Assembly: GCF_964204645.1 (NCBI RefSeq)
Contig: NC_134031.1
Span: 18,359,910 to 18,423,909 of the forward strand
Direction: 5' to 3'
Length of the DNA: 64,000 nucleotides
DNA from: Tubulanus polymorphus
Taxonomy: Eukaryota; Animalia; Nemertea
Part shown: positions 4,737-31,700 of the stretch, piece after piece
Numbering within the stretch: position 1 is the stretch's first letter
How the letters are laid out: each line of letters opens with the position of its first letter
Notes under the pieces: model-generated
Seen by the model: only the letters and a program-made list of their open reading frames with translations
Database searches by the model: none
What the model was told of the DNA's origin: nothing
Translations under genes and position numbers: made by a program

Positions 4737-6992
4737 TTTATTATATATTCTAGACACTGGATTTAGATTATCATTTTAACAGTTCCTACAACACTGATAC
4801 GAGCTCCTGTGGACGAATTGCATAATTCGCTTTTCAACTTCGGTTGGTCTGCTGAATTTTGCTACATGCATTACACCATATTGCATTCATATGAAACCTT
4901 GTAAATTTCATTACCAAGTAATGTAATTTTAAATCAGCCATTCAACTTTTATTCATTCATTCAGTCAACTTTTTTCAAATAGGTTATAATGCGTTAAAAG
5001 GATGACACAACTGATGAATTAAGCAGTTTTACTTTGTAAATGAATTTACCTGGAATGAAACTGTCAGTCATTTCACCGAAGTTCAAAAATAAAACGGGCC
5101 ACGCAGCGCCGTGAGCAATACTGGCCAGAGATCCGACGATAATCAGCAATACATCGAGTTTAGTAGCAAAACGAAACTACAAAATAGTTAAAGAATAAAC
5201 GAGAGGTCAATAACCATCGATGAAACACTGAAAACCAGTCTCGTTAAAACCAGTCTCGAGATTTAAGATCACTTTTTGACTTTTCACAACTGCGCGAATG
5301 GGTCCTGGGGGGTTTTAATCAGAGATCGATAGTCTACGAAGGTGGTGAATTTTTCGTGAAGAGTTCAGTTAGGTTAAAATCAATAGAACCGCAGTCATCG
5401 GGATAAACATCGCATTACAGTAGATAATCACCTATTCACGCCAAGAATGGAATGAGTTCCTAAACTCATTCACGTATACCATATATGGCTTTGGTTTTAT
5501 AACACTTCGAGATTGTCTAGAGATGATGTAAATGTAGCTTTCCAATTTGATCTGATACCGAAAATGGACGACTACCATATATGGTAACAAACACATGAAA
5601 TAGGTTTACTATCTACGCGCAATAACTGAAAATCAATTGGAGTTGAATGGAAACACTTTTTCATTATGAGGAGAATCAAGGTCATATCTATTAATATAAG
5701 CATTGCTCATAATCATTATCAGCTCAGGATTATTTTATCAAAATCAGGATTTCATTCACACTGAGTTCGATAACTTACCATTTGGAAAAATGATACCGTT
5801 TTTTTCTTATCAGTGCCCATAAAACTGAAAAATTAGGATAAGGATAAACTCTTTTTTACTGTAGTTCAAATCTTTGTACTTCGTATCTCCCTAAACAATG
5901 GACAATTGATAACTTACTACTAAGTATTAGTCAATTGCAATAAGTCAATAATACTGTTAAGATTTTACTTAAAAATCAATTTAAAATATTGGAACAATTT
6001 CATTGAAATCATTTGAAGTTACTGGGACTGATTTACACAGTCAAGGTTGGGATTTCGAAAAAGTTCAGCTCATTTTGGTTATGGTAAACTTAAGGCCAGC
6101 ATAAAAACCCATCTTGCTACAACAGGTTTACCTAATGTTCCACCCCAGTCCTGGGAGCAACCTAAGACTGGTCTGATGATTTAAGAGTACGCCTATTTCG
6201 ATGATATTTTCTTGTAAAATTCCCGTAAATACAAAAGTTCAAAGGCTATATATTGCAGTGCATTTCACAAGTGAAAGAATCAATTTAACCTTCATGTTGA
6301 TAAGATATAGTTTCATACTATTTCAAAGTCAGGGTGTGTCTATTTGTGAATGTATTATGATGTTGATATAGGCCTACCGGTAATGACATGGGAGCTTTAT
6401 TTTAAACCTGACATCGATTAACTACAATTACACTGATCTTTGATAGAGAACAAAAACAACTGTAAAAATAATTGACAATTGTCAAAAAATCAAAATTTTT
6501 TACAAAAATCCTACTTACATCGGTTCCAGTTTATCATCACTTTTTTTACGTTTTGAATCCATTTTTTTTGTGTGAAAATTAAAAACTTAGTCAAAGATTT
6601 GAAAGACGTTCTTTATCAATAATAAGATCCAATTGCGAATATTCGAAAAGATCGAATTTTTGAGAACTATGAATTATCAGTTGAATTTCTGTGAATTTCC
6701 GAGGATGCGCGATGGAACATGCTGCTGTATCACTCCACATCCAGGAAATGATGAATGAATGAACACATATACCATGCAACAGATATACCAGTTGGTAACC
6801 ATGGAAACTAATAATCAATACAGAGAATTTGTACCTGACATCTGGTGGTTCAGTTTGTTTCTGCTCTGCTGCGGTTGAATCAACGTCGGTTGAACCATAC
6901 TTATTAAATGATCCATTGATATTTTCTCTCTCTTCATTGCGTGGATTATCACCAGGCAACAGGGCCGCACGCTCATCATTCTCACGGACCAT
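284..6992 (-). CDS. ABCB1: ABCB1/P-glycoprotein (MDR)-type ABC transporter, N-terminal half (TMD1, NBD1, linker); gene continues beyond the left edge
   Basis: GT-AG exons in consistent phase: 6992-6835, 5824-5779, 5176-5050, 4530-4418, 4025-3892, 3817-3646, 3371-3247, 2966-2850, 2760-2685, 2597-2484, 2241-2131, 2041-1916, 1618-1415, 1216-1046, 663-447, 369-284. Motifs: [15 protein letters not shown], Walker [11 protein letters not shown]-loop VSQEPVLF, signature [15 protein letters not shown], Walker [14 protein letters not shown]-loop IAHRLSTV. The exact ABCB paralogue (B1/B4/B5-like) is not resolved. Confidence 0.95.
4612..4812. mobile_element. MITE-like inverted-repeat element with a central (TA)n tract
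   Basis: Arms cacag..gctcgcatcaga..gtaggaactgttaaaacgataatct and agattatcattttaacagttcctac..ctgatacgagctcctgtg. A related copy lies at 26105-26236. Confidence 0.75.
6519..6562 (-). CDS. Candidate alternative first coding exon of the ABCB transporter ([15 protein letters not shown])
   Basis: ATG at 6562-6560 in an A-rich context (cacacaaaaaaaATGg), 14 codons plus 2 nt, then a consensus donor AT|GTAAGT. Phase 2 matches the acceptor of exon 5824-5779. Confidence 0.6.
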
Positions 6993-17522: not shown

Positions 17523-20479
17523 TTCCTGTTATTCAACACACAGGTGGATTTTTAAAATAAATTTTAACATCATCTCCAGCACTTTCTGGTATTAATTGGT
17601 GTGCACTGAAATGGTTCAAACAATTATAGAAATCGCATTTCAAATTTTTAACTCTAATACTAACCGTGTTAGTGGTTATTTGTATAACTACCGGTGATTC
17701 TATAATCTCAAATGTGCTCTGATTCTCGATTTCTTAAATCGGATTTTACAACATTTTGTGATATATTTAAAGACGAATATATGTGCTATGTATAAAATAA
17801 CATCTTCGCAAAAACTTTTCTCATTAGAACAAACAAAATCTTTTTGTATAAACGACATCTTGATATGAAAGCTTTGTAAAAATAGGTACCTATTTATTTT
17901 CCAGATTTTATTAATTTCATGTGATAATAAGATAATAACAATGAATGTGGAGAAGCTGTTCCACTTGGTGGATAATTCCACTCGGCATTCAATTCTGTGA
18001 TAAGTCATCATTAATCGGCATGATAGTGAATATTGTGAAAGGTATGAAACACCTTTGGTTTGAATGTGGTTGTTTGATGAATTATTACACCACATATATA
18101 TGAAATCTTGTACTCTTGTTTTGAAACGACAATAAAAGATAATGTAGTCAATATTTTATCTAAAATAATATCAGTTTTGGTTTTTTCATGTTAGGGAATT
18201 CTAGTACAATGTGGGCTGCTGCAAACTTCTATACTGGTACACCACAACCCTACCAGGCATTTTCAAGGACAATTATTTATTCTAAGAGGAAAATTATTAC
18301 AGATGAAAAAAGAATCATGCAGTCATTACTTGGACACAAAATTCGAACAATAGACCTCCAGGAATTTCTAAGGGTGGTTACTATTCCAAATAAAGGCCGG
18401 TGCCTAATAAGAGTGCGCCCACACGCAGACTACTCGCTCTGTAAAACAATCATGCCGATATAGCTACGATCCTAATACATCCACTTTTCGGGGATCTATT
18501 ACGATCTTTATCGCTTTTTATTGCAACAGAATTGCTTTATGATGACAGCTATCGGGAGATAAAGCTAGTCAGCAGCCATAATATATCAAGTCATTTTAAA
18601 TTGCTCGGGGTGTGACAAGATGGTCAAGTCAGCCAATCACTGATCGCTGTTCTATCTAAACCACAAATTTCTTTAATAAGTTCATAAATAGACCAGCACT
18701 GACCAATTCAAACTTCTCAAACATGAGAACGATATACCGCGTTTAGTGTCAGACTAAAAAGGATTCACCATTGTTAATTCATAAATCGACTACACTGACC
18801 AATTCAAACTTCTCGAATATGAGAAAGAGCCACCACAAGCGATAAAAGTCAATATTATACTCATGGTAGAAACAACGATGAAATAATAAACAAAGCAGGG
18901 CCAAGCCCAAAAACTTCACGAAACGATTGAAGGTTTTAACGTGAATCATATTTATTTTCACACAACAATTATAGAAAATGCCAGATAACGTGCTTAAGGA
19001 ATAATAATGTAAGTTCCTCAACTACGATGACTGTATTTCAAAAATGACCAACCATAATGGACGTATAAACTATAAACTAAGACAATTTACTAATGTTCAT
19101 ATATCCTCATTTATCAAACTCTACTCTATTCTACGATAGGACCTTAATTAAATCGCTATCACATGAACCACTGAATTCTATACAACGGTGAAAAAGTTGC
19201 TACAAACTAAACTATTAACAATTGAAGAGTAATAACATAATGATGAACATGTATGTCGCTAAATGACAGGTATTATACTCAAAGAATTTATCGTATAAGT
19301 TCCTCATGAAGAACAAACACGTGAACTGTATTGCAAAAAAGAACAGTTCAACATAAAAGCATTAAACTAGCGATAAAACCTACGAATTCACTATAATTTT
19401 TCCTAATTGCATTGTCCTAATTAACATTTTACAGACATTATCACTTCACTTGAAATATTATTCTGACATTTTTTCTTCCAGCTTTAGAAAACATTAAATA
19501 ATTATACTTTCAATAAATAATCAACAATGATATCAGTAATTCAAGTTTATAACTGTTTTACATTCGTGTAAATTGTACCAATCACATTTTATTCAACAGA
19601 GTACCCCTAAAACAATCAATAGTTATAACATTCTCGATTTAGTTTAGGTCTATGATTATTTGTTTCGTTTATTACTAACTGAGTAACTGAGTTGATAGAA
19701 TGCTTTAATGATAACAAAAGATCACAAGTTGTTGGCATACTTGGAGAAGGTTATTCTATGAATGAAGAACCTTATTGACAAAATACGTTGATTGATATAT
19801 GAAACCCATAAAGTTTAGTACTGATCTCTAAAACATCATTGAAGTCCAAAACAAGAATACTACACATATCAACTTTTTTTATTTAAAGACTGCAAAAACC
19901 AATTCATCCAATCATGGCAGGCTGAACTGGAGAACAGATTTATATGTCATTATCACAAATCATTCAAAGCTATGCTCAACTAAGTATAAAAATTATTTGA
20001 ACTTAAGTTCACAATATCATGTTGATATTATATCTCAGTTAAGGTGCAACTCAACCAACCTATGAGTCTAAACCAGGCGGTGGATGCGATCATCTAAACA
20101 GCGTCACCAACCCGACTAATCTATCTGGGAACAAAGATCAAGATCATGCAGCGAAGATGAAACTAAGAAGGAACTTTCATTCAGATTATAAAACAGAATG
20201 ACTGTATACAAATTCATCAGTCTTCTCGAAAACAGTTCACCCAATCAATATAAAGTATTTGGATGCGATTTTATTGAAATATTCAAACGTAGATAGTTCC
20301 TTCTAAGACCACAGGCCCCTTATTATCCTAACTTAAATTTCATTAGATAATTCATACTCTGATCTACCACTACAAGTAGACTAATCTGGTAGATTTTGTG
20401 AGCTACATTTCTGACTAGACCAGTTTGTACAAGTGTGAAGTGTAAAATAAATCATTACTTTACTATACTTTGAAGTCCA

Positions 20480-20770
20480 TTATTGTCTCTGTTGCTCCTT
20501 AGTGTTTATAAGATTCACTAGCTGCTCCTGAGTCGGTGTTTATACAATTCCCTAGCTGCTCATCAATGGTTTTTAAGAGGCACTAGCTGCTCCCCGAGTG
20601 TTTTTAAATGATTCACTAGCTGCACCTCAAGTGTTTATAAGATACACTATTGTCTCTGCTGCTCCTTGATCAGTGTTTTTAAGATGCGCTATTGTCCATG
20701 CTGCTCCTCGAGTGTTTATAAGATCCGCTACTGTTGCTCCTGAATCATAATGTTTGTAGAAATCCACCAT
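20480..20770. repeat. Tandem array of about 8 degenerate 30-40 bp units (CTAGCTGCTCC..AGTGTTTATAAGAT)
   Basis: Recurrent gctgctc and tgttt(a/t)ta motifs seen directly. Confidence 0.85.
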
Positions 20771-22227
20771 CTTGTTGAAGATATCCATCATTGGGTGGTA
20801 ACTCGCCGCTGCTGGCTCAACAACTTCTCATCTGGACATCTGCAGTTTTCATCGGCATCAGTAGTCGTCTACTTTTGGTTGTCGTTTACCAATCGAAGAC
20901 CATTATTTCCAGGATAGAGTTAAGCTGAAATAAGAAAAAAGAACATCCTTTGAGGCAGACCATACTAACAAGCATTGATTATAATTTACACGTTAATTTG
21001 AATTATACGGGCTGCCATGTTTTTTGTAGGGGAAAAAATTCATCGAAATTGATTGCGGCTTAAAACCACAATAATTAATAGTAGTTCAGCAACATTAATA
21101 CACCACTGATTAAGACTAGTGACAATAGAATATGAGGCTGGATATAAGATCAGCCGTGCGGACCGTTACATGAAAATTAAACAATATAGGTGAGGTCTGA
21201 TGTCTATACTAGAATAATTTCAGATCATTTTAATTCATCTTTATGTTAGATATTTAAACAATCGGTTGATTATTGAGCTATATAGCTATAGTTTTAGCTA
21301 TAGTTTGTTTTGGCAATTTGACTGCCTATATCCTAGTAATTACCTAGATTTTAATTGTCAGCTAAACAATATTCCTATTATCAAATTAACTTTATTGTCG
21401 GTTAATGATGACACTTGATTCGCCGAGAAATTCATTAATGAAAATGGTAAAACAGCACACAACATGTGGTGTAAAGTATTACCGGTACCTCATTCTTTAA
21501 AAAAGTGTCAATATATTATTTGCAAAAATAATCTATTAACCGACGATCAAGTTTAATTGATAAATAATATATGTATGACTAGTTTATAACTGTCTCATCT
21601 TAACAAGTAAACTTTGCCTGCATGTATACTTTAGTAAGCCCTGAAATATCTACCAATAATTTGGTATCCAACTTTATTAGAATCATAGTTAATTTCTAAG
21701 TAATTGGTCAATTAGAATATTTTCCTATTTATATTTTCATTGTTGAGGCGCGAAATATCTATACTAGAAAATATTTTGATATTCCTAAGATACTTATCGT
21801 ACATATCTTAAGAAAAATCTGATGATTAATATTAACTGGCCTACACATCAATACTCAGCCAAGAATATTCATATGAGACCTAACGAGTAATATTAGAGCA
21901 ATGATTGTTTTAGATTTCAACTCATTAATAACCATCTACCGGCCACAGAGTTTCAATCTTCAATCAGTTTATAGCCAAATTGAGAAAATTGAGAACTTCA
22001 CCAGCGTCTCTGTTCTCTCCAGTGCTATACACATCCTGCCCTTGATGCTAACCCAGTAATGAAAAATCAACTTAGCTTTTTATCAAGACTGCCAAGTTCA
22101 GTTTCGAAAGGTCTCTTGGTGTCTTGTTGATGAGTTTAATTCAAGCTGTAGTCGGTGGTCTCTTCTGGTCGGTAGGATCTAGATGGCTAATGTATCTCAT
22201 GCTGAGGCTTTCCAGATTCATGTTAAG

Positions 22228-22708
22228 CTGAAATGAGATAAAGAATGACATTCTGTAATTACACAATTCTTTGATTAATTGTAATTGACATGTGTATCAA
22301 CTTAACTTAGCATCCTTTTTTCATCGTCCTATGGTGTCTCCGTCATCTTCTTAATCATGGTGATGGGCCAGTTCAGATTAAGTTTACCTGAAATAGTAAA
22401 AAAAGACATTTCTGTAGTCACACAATCCTTTGATTAATTGTAATTGACATGTGTATCAACTTAACTTTCTTAGAATTGCCGAGCATCCTTTTTTCATCGT
22501 CCTATGGTGTCTCCGTTATCTTCTTAATCATGCCGGGCCTGTTCAGATTAAGTTTACCTGAAATCAGAATAAGAACAACATTCTGTAGTTACACAATTCT
22601 TTGACTAATTGTAATTTACATGTGTATCAACTTAACTTTCTCAAGATTGCCGAGTTCAGTATCGTCATCTTCTGTCCTCTTGGGGCATCGTCGTCTTCTG
22701 GGGGAGTC
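22228..22708. repeat. Three tandem ~160-170 bp exon+intron duplications
   Basis: Near-identical 78-79 bp segments at 22228-22306, 22388-22465 and 22558-22636 (cacaattctttgattaattgtaattgacatgtgtatcaacttaac), separated by related exon-like segments. Confidence 0.9.
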
Positions 22709-22745
22709 CTGAAACGAAAAAAAAAGAACAGAGATGAAAACCTGA

Positions 22746-22985
22746 TACGGAACAAAACTAATGTCCCAAAGCGCCAGCTGTCCTTCGCCGGTCATGTGCG
22801 GAGGATGCCAGAAAAAGAGTCAGCCAGGGATTCGCTGCCCTCTACATGCCCTCACACAGAACGCGAAAACCAAGACGACAACCGCTTCAAAATCACCATC
22901 TAACTACAGGATGTCCTAAGCGACGTCAGTAACTGACAAACCTATCAGATTGCACAACACTAAAATAGCGCAGTACAACCAAATT
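22746..22985 (+). mobile_element. Decayed 3' fragment of a non-LTR retrotransposon ORF2 (RTE-like), arm A of an inverted pair
   Basis: Translation KRQLSFAGHVRRMPEKE..(frameshift)..ALYMPSHRTRKPRRQ resembles the R-L-F/W-AGHV-RM..P-G-R-RGRP C-terminus of RTE-type ORF2. Recognised by pattern, not searched. Confidence 0.6.
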
Positions 22986-23009
22986 GACCGGGTTGAGATT
23001 CAAGATCTC

Positions 23010-23290
23010 AACTAGCACTCAAAAGCGTGACAAGAGACTTCATCCACTGACCGAGGTTGTCACAAGGACACAATGAAACCAGCACTCACAAGCCGACAAG
23101 AGACTTCATCTCTGACCGAGGTTGTCACAAGGACACAATGAAAACTAGCACTCAAACTAGAAATCAAAGAGCGCGACAGTAGAATCATCCCTCAGCCGAC
23201 TCAGAATACCAGAAACAAAGAGCGTGACAGTAGAATCATCCCTCATCCGAGCGGTCACAAGGACACAATGAATACTAGTAGCGTGACAGT
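23010..23290. repeat. Tandem ~55-65 bp repeats forming the spacer of the inverted repeat
   Basis: gacaagagacttcatc..ctgaccgaggttgtcacaaggacacaatgaa occurs twice, followed by two diverged gacagtagaatcatccctca units. Confidence 0.85.
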
Positions 23291-23525
23291 CCAGTATAAC
23301 CACTCCATTTTAACCCTGTGCAATCCAACAGATATGCCCATCATTGACATCACTCAGCACTCTCTGCAGTGAGATGTTGAAGTGAAGCAGTTGTCGTCCT
23401 GGTTTTCGTGTTCCGTATGAAGGCGTGTAGAAGGCAGCATTTCCTGACCGACTTTTTTTCTGACATCCTCCACACGTGACCAGCGAAGGAGAGCTGATGC
23501 TTTTGGACATTAGTTTTGTTCCATA
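23288..23525 (-). mobile_element. Decayed RTE-like ORF2 3' fragment, arm B (inverted copy of 22746-22985)
   Basis: QKHQLSFAGHVWRMSEKK..FYTPSYGTRKPGRQ. Aligns by eye with arm A over about 235 bp and starts at the same point. Confidence 0.6.
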
Positions 23526-24439
23526 GAACATCGAAAATCGACAGAGAAATCGGCCCTGAAAAATATAACGGATTAGACCCTGAAAAACAGAACGGGTTAA
23601 AGGCTGCAAAATAGAACGGATTAATTAACACGGAACAGTACAGGACAGCACAGAGACGAACAGTATCACGTAAAACATAAAGACGTCGTTCCTCATGAAG
23701 GAACCAGCTTGTAGAGCGCAGCGTCATCGCGAAGAAAAACGCCAGGAGGAGAATCCACGTCAGCATAGTGTCTGCACGGTGTGAAGAGCCTGAGGTGAAT
23801 GACTGGCTTAACGATTCTACTTACTGTCAACCGGTGGCGTATTTCAATATTGACCAATAGGCAGCCGCGCTGTTTGTCTCTTATTGTGAATGGGTTTACT
23901 GAAGTTTGTGGAAGGTGATACACACGCGACGTACCTCTGTAGTACATCCAGCATACAGACCGGGCTCGGCCGGTACCATTGAAATATTGATCTATAGAAA
24001 TATCTCCGAACATTTGAATTGTCGAAGTTACCGCATGATAGAACACAGACGCGACGTCACCTCTACACACACGGCATATGGAATTGAATGGAAGACCTGG
24101 AGGGACATGCCAATATATTTGCTTTTTGCAAATTAATTGCCAGTTTGACATTTTTTAATCCGTCCGCTAGCGCCACCTCAATGGTTTAAAAAGATATTTA
24201 CCCCACATATCACAATAACGTGATATAGCCATTATCAATAATTTAAAGGAACATTTATCTTAGCCAGTAAGGAATGATGATAATAATGGATGTGGCCGGG
24301 GCCACCGGGCTCGAGGAGTCGTATTTCAAGTTTGGGTGAACTGTTGCTTGCTTAGATCATCCAATATCCCAAAAAAGTAACTTGGTTTAGGATTTCGATA
24401 TCTGATGTTCTATTGCTAAGGTTTGCCAATCGTAGAAAG

Positions 24440-24957
24440 ATCTCATATTATGACCATTATTATTATTGGCCATCAGGATTAAGGAACACAGATCAAAGAC
24501 TTCTGCGATTGGACAACATCTCGCAATTTGTCACACTTGTGATCAGGAATTCAGTAACAACAAATTCAAAATTCTAGACAAAGGTTCATCTGATCTCGAC
24601 TGTAAAATTAGGGAGGCCCTGTTTATTAAAGCGCAACGACCCTCTTTAAACCAACAATTATTTCAAAACGGCTCATCCTTTATCCTAAATGTATTCAAAA
24701 AATTAGTTTGTAATTAAATACTTGGTTTGTAATTAGCTTAGAATTTAGCACTTGTAATTTTGTAACTTATGTTGTATATAAACCTGTAGTTTAATCATTT
24801 GATTCACTTGTATTTCACCTGATGAGGGGATATGATCCCGAAAACGTTCGTGTTAATAAACTGTATTTACTCATTAGAAAATGAGGTTTTTAATGTTATC
24901 GCTTCTATGGTTATTCGGATATTTGAACTCTCTTCCTAAGATCTATCTCATATTATG
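24440..24957 (+). mobile_element. 5'-truncated Penelope-like retroelement (GIY-YIG endonuclease C-terminus plus 3' pLTR) with a 13-bp target-site duplication
   Basis: ORF 24466-24717 RIKEH..SAIGQH..FKILDK..KIREALFIK..PSLNQQ is typical of PLE GIY-YIG tails. ATCTCATATTATG is repeated at 24440-24452 and 24945-24957. A hammerhead motif and AATAAA (24855) follow the ORF. Confidence 0.85.
24816..24852 (+). ncRNA. Minimal type I hammerhead ribozyme
   Basis: cac-CTGATGA-ggggatatgatccc-GAAA-acgt-TC-gtg: stem I cac/gtg, intact core, stem II ggg/ccc, palindromic AACGTT stem III, predicted cleavage after UUC (24849). Confidence 0.8.
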
Positions 24958-24994
24958 TTTGACGGACTGCTGAATCGGCTATATCGGCCGCTAT

Positions 24995-25545
24995 GTTCAA
25001 GTTCAAGTTCAAGTTCAAATTTATTTCACAGAAAGCATGACAGGCTATGTACACAGGTTGAGAGAAAACAAACAATAAAATTTACAATTTTTTTAAACAA
25101 AGCACAATTATAAAAAGAGAGAGAGGACAGTAGCTTTCAGTGTGGGCCAAGCAAAGCCTTTAGGCCGCTGTCGCAAGCACCCAGGGAAAAAAACGAAAGG
25201 GAAATGAAGAAACAAAGGGGAAGGAAATGAAAGTTGATGATTTTTGATAATTTCAGGAGAGTTTATATGAGTAAGCTAGAGGGTTCAGGAGAGTGAGCAA
25301 TTATAACAATTAGGGTTATTACATTGATGGATATCATTGTAGGCGGAGGTGAGATATGGTCTGAGTTTACGTTTTAAATTTTGTTTGCTTGTTTGTAGGA
25401 TGTCATTGGAAAAAGGTAGTTTTTGCCAGATGTTTGAAAGAATGTTTTGAGGTGAATTTTGAGGCGGGGTTGGTGGTGTTTGTTTTGAAAATGAGGAATA
25501 TGCGTGGTCTAAATATATGCTTTTTACCTCCGAGAAGTAATGCAC
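24995..25545 (-). mobile_element. 3' end of a CR1/L2-group LINE with (TTGAAC)n tail
   Basis: ORF remnant ending NIWQKLP..LKRKLRPYL..CNNPNCYNC, followed on the minus strand by a 3' UTR, AATAAA and four TTGAAC repeats (24995-25018). Lies tail-to-tail with the Penelope-like element. Confidence 0.7.
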
Positions 25546-25730
25546 TATATCAGGGGCCGCCGTGAATCAGACGTGTGGCCGCGGCCGGGACCCTAGCTTG
25601 AGCCGTGTTTTAGACGCTACCGGCGTTGCCAGTGTTTACATTTCCGGGTTTTGACGTTTCCGTTTTGCAGCATTCGAGTATTTCTTATTCTAATTAACAA
25701 TAAAATACTGAAATTAAGTGATAGATAATA

Positions 25731-28700
25731 ATGTCAGGCGAGTCGGAATCATCTTACCGGGTGAGAAACTGTTCATATTTGGAAATAAGAATTCTATAGA
25801 TTCTCGTAAAGGTTCAAAACCGATAAAGATAAGTCATTCTCGCTGACGACATGGACGAGATGTCAAATTCAACTTCAATTCACAAGTTTGTTAATCTTGT
25901 TCTTTTTAGGCTTCTTTTTACGAAGGCCTTGTGTAAATGTCCTTGTTTTTTTCTAGATGCTTCAGCGTCTCGGTAAAGGTGCCCAAGGAGCCGTTTATTT
26001 GGTCGAACATAAGGAGGAGGGGAAACAGTATGTTCTCAAAAAGGTAGTTGATCTAGTCTTTAATCTGGTTTTATTTTGTCTTTAAATTGTTAGCTTTAAA
26101 GCCTCGGGGCTCGTATCAGAGTTGTAGGTAATTTAAAAACGATAATCTGTTAATCCAATGTATAAAGTATATATAAAATAAGTTATTTTATAAATACTAT
26201 ATACATTGGATTAACAGATGAGTATGAGCCCCTGTGCTTTAAAGCTAAAGCTGAATAGTTGCATAGGAGATTATTAGACACTTTTACCCAGATACCTATG
26301 AATTGAGTCATTTAAATATCTATTAGACTGAAATTATGAGACCGGTGCAAATTTGAAATATATAAGTACTTCACAAGATAAGCTCACTTGGCATTGAACC
26401 CAATAATTTACGAAGTAGGGATTTTTTCTCTTGACTATTATTGATTAGATTACTCATGGTTTTATGTGATTCAAGGGATATACGGCACTGATAATCATCT
26501 CATTAAACCATTCGAAAAAAGTTTGTCTGGGTCCAAAGACGTCATAACATTCTCTTCGTGAAATCAATTGAAAAGGTTATTGGGGGCTTAAAATTGAGAA
26601 CTGTGAGAGTGGGTTCTGACATTGACTGCTTAGTCTGCCCAAAGAATCAATGTTATAGATTTCCCAGCAACATTTCCCCACCCAAAGGGTCTTATACAAA
26701 GGGCTTTGGGAGAGGATATGACCTGCCTTTTGTGTGGAGTGTCTGAGGGTACAATCAACCACCTCATCTGACTCTCAACTGGGTCTTGAAACTATCTTTA
26801 AAATCCATTGTAACGAAAGGGCATCAGTATCGTCAAGTACCCGTGCCTGGGCCACGGCAGCCATATGTACAAACGTTCAAGTTCAAGTTGATTTAGATAT
26901 TTTGAATTTGGTTTTTTTAAGGTTGAATGTCGAGATGAAAGTGAAGCGAACAAAGCGTTCAAAGAGGTATTTATTGATTTATAGCATTTTATCCTGACCA
27001 AATCATTTCTTGATTCCTGGGTTTTAGAAAAACTAACCCCAACTCCAAAATTAAAGAGTCATATTTTCATTCAGAACTGCATAAAAAAAGGTTTCAACGT
27101 ACAAAACTGAATTCTGAAGGGATCAAATAAATGTTGTAATTGTATATTTTTGATTTTGGATGTCGTTTTGATTTCAGGCAGTTGCTTTAGCGAAGTTGCA
27201 GCATGTATATATTTGTGGTTATAAAGAGTTCTATGTGATGTGGGATAAAGATGAATGCGCGATGTATGTGTGTATTATAATGGAATATTATAAACACGGT
27301 GACCTCGATAAAATACTCAAACAGAAAAGAAAAGAGCGAACTCCAATTGAAGAAATCGTAAGTTTACAGTCACATGGCGGTCACATTCACAGGATACTTT
27401 CAGATCTGAGAATCAAAAATTGATATTTCACAGGCCCTTGACTGAACATTCCCCGATTTAATTGATTTAAGATATTCTCAGGGCTGTTTCTTATCAAGAG
27501 GTTCCTTATGCAACTCATCTCACCACAGTGAGAACAACAAGACATCAAAAATTCAAATTCCCTGATTTAAAAGATGATTCAGAATTCCCTCATTTTCCCT
27601 GCAGAAAAAAATGAATCCAGAATGCCTTGGTTATTTTCCCTGATCTATAAGAACCCCGCTTTCAAGATCAAATATCTGGTTCCTGTTTTACGAAAAAAGA
27701 TAAACTAAAATTTTTGGTACGGTTTTTGTTGGTCACCGTACTTCACATTATCAATGAGGACTACCATTTGAACTTAACTGTGTAAACTTTTGCGTGAAAT
27801 TGGACCCAAATGTCATAAACTTAAGAACTGAAAAGTTCAAAATCTGTTATAAAACTATTCATGTATTTTATTGTAGATTATAAAAAAGTGGTTGGGTCAA
27901 ATGGTCGAAGCTTTGCTGTTTATTCATCATGAGAAAGTCATTCACAGGTAAGGTATTCAAACACGCCCCCCCACTTACACACCAAATGTTTAACTCTAAA
28001 TAATCTTTATGATTTCTTCACTAATTGACATAATATTAAATAAATTTTTGAGGGTTAGAATCTTCTTTGTGAAACTGGGTTCTGGCCTTGTTAGAATTAC
28101 AAATAGAATGTTTCGACACTGTTTAACTGGCAAACTGGCTTACCCGTCAGATCAGTAACAGTAGCGGCAATAGATTCCTCTATTTAGTTTTGCTTGTATT
28201 CAGGAATTAGAAAATAAAAAGGGTCGAGGTTTTATCTGATCGATTGAAAGTGTTGTTTATGATATTATTTCAGGGATCTGAAACCGAGTAATATTTTCAT
28301 GCAAGAAGATTTGAGTATATCGCTGGGCGATTTCGGCGTCGCCACGGTAATGGATGATAGTCGCACTAAAACGCGTACGGCGATCGGGTCGATGAACTGG
28401 ATGGCTCCGGAGGTGATGGAGCGACCCTACGACGAGCGCAGCGATGTCTGGTCTCTCGGGTGTATCATTCTGGAGATGACGACGTGCGGTTTCCTGGACA
28501 CGAATCACATGATGAGTAAACTGTTCGAGTTGAAGTCGAGTCAGGAAGTTCTCGAGGAAACATTGCAGGAAGTTTCGAAGACGTATTCGGTCGAGTTGGT
28601 GTCGGTAATTCGGGCGATGCTTCGTCGTAACTTCAAACAAAGACCGTCATCGGAGTAAGAGAATTGTGGATAACTGTGGAACTAGGATTCAGTTTAACCC

Positions 28701-31700
28701 TTTGGGGTCATTCATTTATTACGTACGCATTAGGGGAGGGGTCAGGGCAATTGCGTACTGTTATGCTTAATGTATATTTACAAATTTTATGCATACGTAA
28801 TAAATGAATGATCCCTTTAATGGCTAACAGTTCTCCACCTTGAACCCAGTTCCATAGTTTTGAGTTTAATACGACTGTACCATTAAAGTAAAATGAATTC
28901 GGCTTCATTTTTCAGAGAATTGGTTGAATTCCCGTATGTGAAAGACTGTCTCGCTTTGAGTGGGTCAGCACTGGCTGAACAACGCAAAAAGAGTCTCGGA
29001 AAAGGAACTGGGGGTAAGTGTTGAATTACACTGAACTACTACCAGTAGAATTGATGAGAGACCAGTGAAAGATTGACTGTTACTGATATGATTGATGAGA
29101 GGCACCTTTCTAAACTGTAATTCTTTGATGTATTGTTGTTTTAGGTCCCGTACCTAGAGGAAGTGGTGTAGCGGCCATTATTAAATACCTCGAGACCGAA
29201 CGCGGCCATGAGTCGTGCGTAAAAGACGGTCTGGAATATCTGTACGAACTTTCGAACAACGCTCCGTTAAATATTGATAACAGCGGGAAAATACTGATCG
29301 CGAATTTAATGAAAGAGAATATCGCGAGTAAAGACATTTTAGTGAGCGGGTGTAATGTGTTACAATCAATGGTTCCTGCAGGTAATCAACTCATTTCAAT
29401 CCAGTTCGATCCAGTTCCACAGAACTTCAAACCAGTTCAATCCAGTTCCACAGATTTTATTTCAATCGAAAATATTATCGTTTGTTTTCTTTGCAGCGAG
29501 TGAAAACGATGCATTATTCTCAGATGAAATTGTTTTAGTCGTGATTCAAGCCATGAAGGTCAGTTGACTGTCAGTTACAATGTACTCTCTTTCCCTGTGA
29601 TGATCATGGTCAAGCCTTTCTTAACAGGTTGGCCACTTCGCTGAAAATCATGGAAAAAATCAGGGAATTTTCTTTAAAAAGTCAGTGGATGGTCAGGGAA
29701 TTTTGTAAAAAAAAAAACTGAAAAAATTTGGGAAAATTCAGGAAAATTTGTTGACGTTTGATCGCGTGTAAAATCAAACAGTTTCCGTCTATGTCTTTTG
29801 TATTGGACTGTGTTGAATTGATTTGATTCTTAAATTCAGAGAAAACAACGTGCAAGTCAGATAAAAGTGGCCACCCTGCTTTAAACTAGTCCCTGACAGT
29901 AGTTTTCACTTAGATGATTTGATATTTCAGGCTCATGGAGGTTCACTGCGCGTTCAGATGGCTGGAGCTGCTCTTTTAGTGGAAGAAGCTGCTAATGGTA
30001 ATGTATAAACTACCCAGTGGCAGATTTATGGGGTGTGGTGTTGGGGTCCGGACCCCTGTCTTTCCACTGAGTTTGCACTTTCAACAAGACAAAGATTGTT
30101 AAAACCTGCACATTTGACACACATCCTCTCAGAAATTGCATATTTTCAGATGTTTTTCTTTCAAAGATATCTAACATGGAGGATGGGACTAGGCTTATAG
30201 CCTATGATGCCCTGCTTTATGTGAATAATTCCTCTTAACTCACAACTGTGGAACTGGATTCTGAGTTCAGAGTTAACTCTGACTCACAACTGTGGGACTG
30301 GATCCTGGGGTTATTCAACGAGTATCAAATATTTGTATGACCACACTGATCTCAACTTCGATGACTTTGGAAGAAAAGGAATGGTTTGCATCGGGAACTT
30401 CAGAATCTGAAGCCAGTGAAGACTGATTATAACAATCCTATGATGTTTTGGTTCACCTATCATAAATACTGTTGCTTATTAAACTTATTGGATCTTCAGT
30501 TCAGAGTTAATCACTATATTACACTCCCAACTGTAGAACTGGATCCAGTGTAACAAATTTTCATGCAAAATCTTCAGTCTAAATTGATTTCTGTTTCGTA
30601 ATGTCTCTCATTACTGTTTTCGTTATAGATGAGAGCTGCAGCCCAACAGCACTAGGGGGCGCTGTAGGTGTTATTCTGGACGCGATGAGAACGTTCACTA
30701 AGGAAACGACATTGTTGTTATCGTGTACTGGTGCTCTACTCAGTTTATCCATCAATGGTTCGTTTGAAAAAAAAACAAGAAACATGTTTTATATAGCCCA
30801 CTTGATTTAGAAATAAAGAACCCAGTTCCGATGTTCAGGGTTCTCACACAGATCAGGGAAAAGTCTATTTTACTCGGTGTCCTGTTGTTCTTGCTGATGA
30901 TGAGCGACACAAGGAACTTCTTGATAAGAAACGGCCCTTACTGACAAATATCTTACATCTTATCAGGGAATTTTAGTCAAGGGTCATGAAAATTCATTAA
31001 ACTATCAGGGAAGTTTGATTCCCTGATCTGTAAGAACCGTGAATGTTGTCTGTTCAAATTCATCTTAAATGATAAGTTTCTATTTTCTGAACGGCGCAGC
31101 AGTGAATGTGGTTCATCGTATTTTCAGAGAATACTTGTAAACTGGTAACAACAGAGAAAGGAATGCAGGATGTTTGTAACTGTATGGATTTACATAAAAC
31201 CAACCCGGAATTAGTTGCGTCTGCTGCTAAAGTGATAGCTCCATTATTGATCGATGGTGAGTGGACCCCTCCTCATCTCATCTCACATCATCTCCCCTCA
31301 CTTTGAAAATTTATGTGGTATATTTTGATTCAAAATGTTCAAAACTTGTGAGTCTACTGCTTATTCAGAAACGTGTTTCACATTTTCATTGACTCAAAAA
31401 CAAAAAGTGGCCACCCTGTATCGCCAGAACTAGTCAGATATTTAATCATCAGGTTCGGACTGATGATAAGAGTGCTGTTTGTTTCTATATTTTTTAGATG
31501 ATAATCTGCAGTTAGCGAAGAAGTTGGATTTAGTTCCGTTGTTGATTGAAGCGATTCACAATCATTTCAAAGAGGCAGATGTCGTAGAAGCTGCTTGCAT
31601 GGCGTTAACCGATCTTATTTACGCCGATGGTTCGTGTCTAAAACAAGTTTCTCAAAATTGTAAACCTGACTGTGACTACCATTTGAGAGTAGTTCTACCT

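Follow-up and report, generated by a model that had tools for sequence, protein, structure and literature searches.

The stretch of DNA analysed here (the window) comprises 64,000 nucleotides of contig NC_134031.1 of the nemertean Tubulanus polymorphus, and contains a long inverted repeat whose two arms face each other across a spacer built of tandem repeats (Table 1). A repeat search of the window detected two collinear arm pairs, 22746-22828 with 23443-23525 and 22834-22889 with 23383-23438, each 86% complementary, which are merged by gapped local alignment into a single pairing of 219 columns. Both arms begin at a common starting point, TA(C/T)GGAACAAAACTAATG, and no duplication was found at the arm ends of the window copy. 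The facing arms, the tandem-repeat spacer and the identical starting point had been described in an earlier, sequence-only reading of the locus, and were all borne out by the repeat search and the gapped alignment. The spacer harbours a 65-bp unit repeated 2.2 times (23010-23156) and a second repeat consisting of two 38-nt copies at 51-bp spacing (23162-23250). In the consensuses of the subfamilies to which the unit belongs, the pairing of the arms extends over about 250 columns.

Several other features occur in the vicinity of the hairpin. On the minus strand, the 24-bp unit located next to the right arm reads as a polypyrimidine run followed by CAG/G, and resembles a 3' splice site. The 83-aa ORF that follows the repeat copy gave no Pfam match above threshold, and is reminiscent of the GIY-YIG endonuclease tail found in Penelope-like elements. 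Further downstream, two ORFs read like protein kinase exons (...HGDLDKILKQ... and ...SMNWMAPEV...SDVWSLGCI...) and point to a plus-strand kinase gene some 3-4 kb past the repeat copy.

Table 1. Features of the window in and around the inverted repeat (window positions).
Feature	Position	Strand	Basis or remark
Larger non-coding repeat copy, approximate extent	18444..24448	.	Homology to the C7, C1, C2, C6 and C12 sisters
Tandem array, units of ~31-43 bp (GTGTTTATAAGAT.CACTAGCTGCTCC...)	20502..20742		Within the larger repeat copy
171-bp unit, tandem x2 (88% matches)	22309..22654		Repeats part of the family left flank
Left flank common to all sampled copies, outside the inverted repeat	22538..22745	.	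Copy alignments
Left arm	22746..22966	-	Pairs with 23307-23525, 78% identity; 3' arm on the putative minus-strand transcript
Spacer/loop, ~340 nt, tandem repeats	22967..23306	-	Repeat searches
Right arm	23307..23525	-	5' arm on the putative minus-strand transcript; arm alignment and folding
Right flank common to the family	23526..23800	.	Copy alignments
24-bp x3 tandem repeat	23554..23624		Just outside the right arm; conserved across subfamilies
83-aa ORF (MAIRIKEHRSKTSAIGQHL...)	24466..24717	+	Just past the repeat copy
Kinase-like ORF	27196..27423	+	Reads like a protein kinase exon
Kinase-like ORF	28299..28658	+	Reads like a protein kinase exon

Treated as RNA, the minus strand of the window unit folds with an energy of -423.3 kcal/mol (z -25), against -311.6 kcal/mol (z -14) for the plus strand, a difference of about 110 kcal/mol in favour of the minus strand. 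The two strands rank in the same order when they are folded as single-stranded DNA with DNA energy parameters (-179.1 kcal/mol for the minus strand versus -149.2 kcal/mol for the plus strand). According to these models, the inverted repeat would be foldable as a single transcript over some 220-250 paired columns. Compared with the reverse complement of the right arm, the left arm exhibits 16 C>T and 12 A>G differences, i.e., 28 positions that pair as G-U on the minus strand, and 2 T>C and 6 G>A differences, i.e., 8 positions that oppose each other as A-C, in addition to 12 transversions. The bias of 28 versus 8 was submitted to a binomial test on the aligned arms (p=0.0012), and the earlier hand count of roughly 30 versus 9 was correct. 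G-U pairs represent about 12% of the stem. The spacer by itself shows no significant fold on either strand as compared with shuffled sequences (z -0.8 and +0.15). The MFE and RNAalifold models both draw a long rod across the loop, but such a structured loop is unsupported, the spacer folding no better than its shuffles. The covariance models of Rfam, applied to four copies with their flanks, gave a chance-level match only (E 0.6) and no family.

Both arms translate into ...RQLSFAGHV.RM.EKES... and, past a frameshift, ...TRKPGRQ..., with the LINE-like sense on the plus strand in the left arm and on the minus strand in the right arm. This motif (..RLSFAGHV.RM.EKES../..TRKPGRQ..) reads as a putative LINE ORF2 C-terminal tail. 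Only ~30-35 aa of LINE-like sequence lie in frame, and searches gave neither a match in Pfam nor a lead in the ESM Atlas, so that the RTE-like assignment of the sequence-only reading was not confirmed. No parent LINE was detected by sensitive blastn against the window and the fetched loci, and the search of the genome for relatives of the arms scored the best 40 candidates, a depth at which diverged LINEs could escape. With respect to the origin of the arms, two independent LINE insertions are unlikely, since both arms have an identical first base and the unit has been copied in its entirety, as a single block. A SINE mobilised via a LINE 3' tail was also rejected, because the LINE-like segment is internal and does not form the 3' end of the element.

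The hairpin is widely distributed outside the window. When 268 Mb of genome in 77 contigs were searched with the 780-bp unit, at least 40 full-length matches of 87-97% identity were retrieved from many contigs, every one of them possessing its own arm-to-arm cross-match (74-80%). The window unit is slightly worn and 97% identical to its nearest sisters. In addition, the 16-mer at the arm tip has 245 exact matches in the genome (129 forward and 116 reverse, against 0 for the reversed control), mostly organized in convergent pairs 660-790 bp apart, which corresponds to about 120 or more hairpin copies. Six unpaired matches to the arm 16-mer were inspected and all of them are hairpin-family copies, with no LINE or other target among them. 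The sibling loci that the sequence-only reading had proposed to look for are thus numerous, and the domestication of a retrotransposon fragment into a spliced hairpin gene, which it had inferred, is not borne out: the unit is part of a dispersed repeat, and its copies depart from the single or locally tandem arrangement of a discrete host locus for an hpRNA gene. As far as annotation is concerned, it would be wrong to label any of these ~120 or more copies as a hairpin-RNA gene that is unique.

Judging from its sequence, the carrier of the hairpin is a large, modular, non-coding dispersed repeat. In every copy, homology continues beyond the arm ends, over about 200 bp on the left side and for 250 bp or more on the right, and the arms are internal to the repeat, family sequence extending for at least ~850 bp in one direction and for several kb in the opposite one. 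The nearest sister copies align with the window from ~18444 to 24084-24448 (445-463 to 6085-6449 of a query made of window positions 18000-30000), the copies of the largest subfamily, G2, have at least 7 kb in common, and the carrier repeat measures at least 6-7 kb. Depending on the copies, the left and right continuations occur as several variants, each common to several copies, and the repeat is therefore modular. No ORF of at least 70 aa occurs in the window between 19021 and 22601, and none of at least 100 aa occurs over the 7 kb or more of the G2-type copies, except for the read-through of the arms. No LTR, TIR, terminal repeat or target-site duplication was found at the sampled element ends. 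The ends mapped so far, CAACAAC... on the left and ...GTTAGAGAT or ...CTTGGAG on the right, are modular and provisional; they are unlike the 5'-TC...CTRR-3' termini, with a short 3' hairpin and insertion at AT, of Helitrons and Helentrons, a comparison made on ends that are not securely defined. An interpretation of the arms as the termini of a MITE or of a foldback element was rejected, since homology runs past both arms in all subfamilies, without target-site duplication.

Thirty copies first fetched were distributed among three subfamilies, G1, the subfamily of the window copy (n=5), G2 (n=23) and G3 (n=2), and twelve further copies yielded a fourth lineage, G4. The G2 copies are 98.8% identical to their own consensus. 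When the consensuses of G1, G2 and G3 are compared, divergence amounts to 12-15% in the arms and 2-3% in the spacer, whereas G4 has arms 85-88% identical to those of G2 and a spacer that is, by eye, roughly 60-65% alike. The idea of a centre kept as sequence accordingly holds within G1-G3 only, the G4 spacer having diverged far more than the arms. The members of G4 (L031 and L035-L042, e.g., G000:C1:23807390-23808120) contain related ~65-bp units in a spacer of variable length, with an arm-tip spacing of 663-786 bp. The tandem duplication of the 171-bp unit was seen only in the subfamily of the window (L001-L007). Within every subfamily consensus the arms are 76-80% alike, and the G-U:A-C counts on the minus strand amount to 30:11, 25:7, 32:10 and 35:10 in the four consensuses, a 3:1 excess which has to be read as one inherited state and not as four independent observations. 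The occurrence of the same excess in all four consensuses indicates that the bias predates the insertion in the window, and that the hairpin was not domesticated there.

The arms of the different subfamilies have changed in a coordinated manner. Among the G1-G3 consensuses, 15 pair columns are compensatory, versus 0-4 in controls in which the partner was shifted by 1-8 columns, and 2000 random-partner shuffles averaged 1.8 such columns and never exceeded 7. With the four consensuses, the number of compensatory columns reaches 20 (versus 2-5 in shifted controls, and a mean of 2.7 with a maximum of 9 in 2000 shuffles), the consensuses of the small subfamilies including some private decay. RNAalifold, applied to 30 copies, predicted 291 pairs, 18 of them with kept double changes. 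Some columns pass via wobble intermediates, e.g., U-A/U-G/C-G or U-G/C-G/U-A/G-U. The covarying columns are gathered in two patches, some of them are adjacent, and one third correspond to double transversions; a kept double change was also observed in two single copies. The hairpin proposed by the sequence-only reading consequently stands as a long stem that favours the minus strand and whose pairing is apparently maintained, on account of the compensatory excess and of the unskewed flanks, but not as a domesticated gene specific to this locus.

The possible contribution of a mutational bias was approached in several ways. Changes that oppose one lineage to the three others comprise 22 A>G+C>T and 21 G>A+T>C substitutions, together with 33 transversions, and no net substitution flux toward G/T on the minus strand is found across the four lineages. 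The singletons of G2, which represent post-insertion decay, are strand-symmetric (16 changes from Watson-Crick to G-U versus 12 from Watson-Crick to A-C) and display no A>G excess. Recent polarised lineage-specific changes (14 versus 7 and 17 versus 12) are weakly biased, neither contrast being significant. The G+T content of the minus strand is 0.64 in the left arm and 0.61 in the loop, versus 0.47 and 0.53 in the flanks. An equal G+T skew in the flanks would have pointed to the rival named in the sequence-only reading, a local transcription-associated mutational asymmetry. No such skew exists, and this rival is rejected, taking into account the presence of the bias in all consensuses, the unskewed flanks and the absence of flux. 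Both A>G and C>T contribute to the bias, in both arms, within a spectrum of substitutions that includes ~37-43% transversions and in which A>G is not dominant, so that ADAR editing alone does not fit. A fossil of ADAR hyper-editing was rejected for the same reasons, and because of the missing A>G excess among singletons. Taken together, the mutation tests favour a constraint on minus-strand pairing. As a separate observation, private substitutions of G2 per non-CpG site amount to 0.035 in the spacer versus 0.065 and 0.112 in the arms, i.e., they are ~2.5 times rarer in the spacer, which may reflect unsampled sub-lineages, a more mutable stem or a constraint on the loop.

Copy number, ancestral bias, covariation, folding asymmetry and lack of directional flux were all computed directly. 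The explanation which, on balance, we favour as somewhat more likely than not is that the window contains a passive copy of a conserved hairpin module, whose stem would be kept on one strand, transcribed and needed in cis. The repeat family probably makes use of the hairpin in single-stranded form, and the spreading lineages appear to have preserved its pairing on one of the two strands. We infer that the strand in question is a transcribed RNA and that the stem has a role. The ~250-bp arms, which apparently come from the 3'-terminal part of a LINE ORF2, would have been inverted and duplicated once in the ancestor of the family. The lineages that spread since then would have kept the arms paired on what is the minus strand of the window, Watson-Crick pairs presumably turning into G-U pairs or being compensated on the other arm, and A-C mismatches staying rare. 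Transcription of the repeat from the minus strand is the most likely reading, and the resulting RNA, a long imperfect stem closed by a loop of ~300 nt, may be needed in cis for the spread of the repeat itself or for the handling of the RNA.

Another explanation is that the module serves as an hpRNA or endo-siRNA precursor, the transcribed copies being diced into small RNAs directed against the parental LINE or other targets. It overlaps with the conserved module needed in cis, as dicing would be one of the things that the stem does, and, taken as an explanation in its own right, it appears unlikely. The stem possesses suitable properties, being long, imperfect and rich in G-U pairs on one favoured strand, and G-U-rich hairpins are effective RNAi triggers that avoid the problems associated with perfect DNA palindromes (PMC9263138). 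A domain search of the host genome disclosed one Dicer_dimer locus, and hence at least one Dicer locus, along with about four adenosine-deaminase-domain loci, so that both the dicing and the editing of dsRNA are possible in principle. On the other side, no target was found, all 245 matches of the 16-mer being apparently copies of the family (as judged from the six unpaired ones that were checked), and neither the window nor the fetched loci contain a LINE copy. Moreover, selection acting on the host could hardly hold the pairing in 120 or more dispersed copies, and the private mutations of the copies look neutral.

The pairing could also operate at the DNA level, through gene conversion, quasi-palindrome template switching or a hairpin of single-stranded DNA formed during transposition, without any function of an RNA, which we consider less likely again. 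The clustering of the covarying columns, some of them adjacent and one third of them double transversions, and the double changes kept in two single copies could also result from such processes. The strand asymmetry, moreover, persists with DNA parameters, and the bacterial REPINs offer an example of mobile hairpin DNA with compensatory changes (PMC3116915). However, the copying of one arm onto the other yields Watson-Crick pairs only and with no strand preference, which leaves unexplained both the 3:1 G-U excess and the cycling of columns through U-A, U-G, C-G and G-U pairs. In addition, the arms are still just 76-80% identical, and the inverted repeat is internal instead of terminal.

A more specific proposal is that of a mobile, non-coding repeat which would need the ~250-bp RNA stem, made from captured LINE coding sequence, in order to spread, possibly as a parasite or antagonist of that LINE that uses or feeds the dsRNA machinery of the host, with selection acting on the repeat lineage and not on the host; its probability is lower still, and we regard it as doubtful. 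Least probable of all is the absence of any function, i.e., a relic of strand-asymmetric mutation or editing (transcription-associated or of the ADAR/APOBEC type) in an ancestral master copy, with covariation due to chance or artefact: the inheritance of the bias from the family ancestor, the equally G+T-rich loop, the weak bias of recent polarised changes and the ADAR/ADAT-like genes of the genome fit such a relic, but the contribution of both A>G and C>T in both arms, the frequent transversions without dominance of A>G or any excess of it among singletons, the lack of net flux next to unskewed flanks, and a covariation far above shifted and shuffled controls all argue against it.

The conserved module resembles different known systems in some respects and differs from each of them in others. 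Like the hpRNA loci of the Drosophila type, it is a long inverted repeat, a few hundred bp in length and imperfect, that apparently derives from another element and is predicted to fold on one strand with many G-U pairs. Those loci, however, occur singly or in tandem in the host, and both their target gene and their Dicer-2 products are known, whereas the present module is internal to at least ~120 dispersed copies and no target was found for it. Inverted-repeat transposons and MITEs from plants, mouse oocytes and nematodes similarly consist of mobile families with a fold-back that would give dsRNA when it is read through. The inverted repeats of MITEs and foldback elements are nevertheless terminal and serve a transposase, in contrast to the internal, LINE-like arms described here, which covary and carry a one-strand G-U bias. 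REPINs are also non-coding mobile units defined by a hairpin, with frequent two-sided compensatory changes (PMC3116915), but they are ~70-100 nt long, bacterial, and moved as single-stranded DNA by a RAYT transposase, as opposed to a ~250-bp stem in an animal host. Finally, in hairpin transgenes engineered with G:U pairs, C-to-T changes in one arm disrupt the palindrome in the DNA, yet wobble pairing keeps the RNA stem together (PMC9263138). Such hairpins are designed, with all changes in one arm, whereas both arms carry A>G and C>T changes here. Their design nonetheless suggests what might cause hairpins in nature to drift toward one-strand G-U pairing.

Fold-backs are a frequent feature of repeats, and most often they are set aside as the remains of decaying transposons. 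The module described here carries two marks of single-strand use, a G-U excess on one strand and compensatory changes between subfamilies, and it belongs to a family that was copied recently, the copies of the largest subfamily having diverged by ~1% from their consensus. Should the stem prove to be RNA, the family would represent either a spreading structured non-coding RNA or a supplier of dsRNA across the whole genome, and this in the nemerteans, a phylum whose small-RNA biology is, to our knowledge, almost unknown. With regard to their chromosomal distribution, the copies among the matches listed for C1-C5 reside almost only in the outer thirds of these chromosome-sized contigs. On C1, which measures 32 Mb, the listed family copies are located at 0.2-8.5 Mb and 23.8-31.3 Mb.
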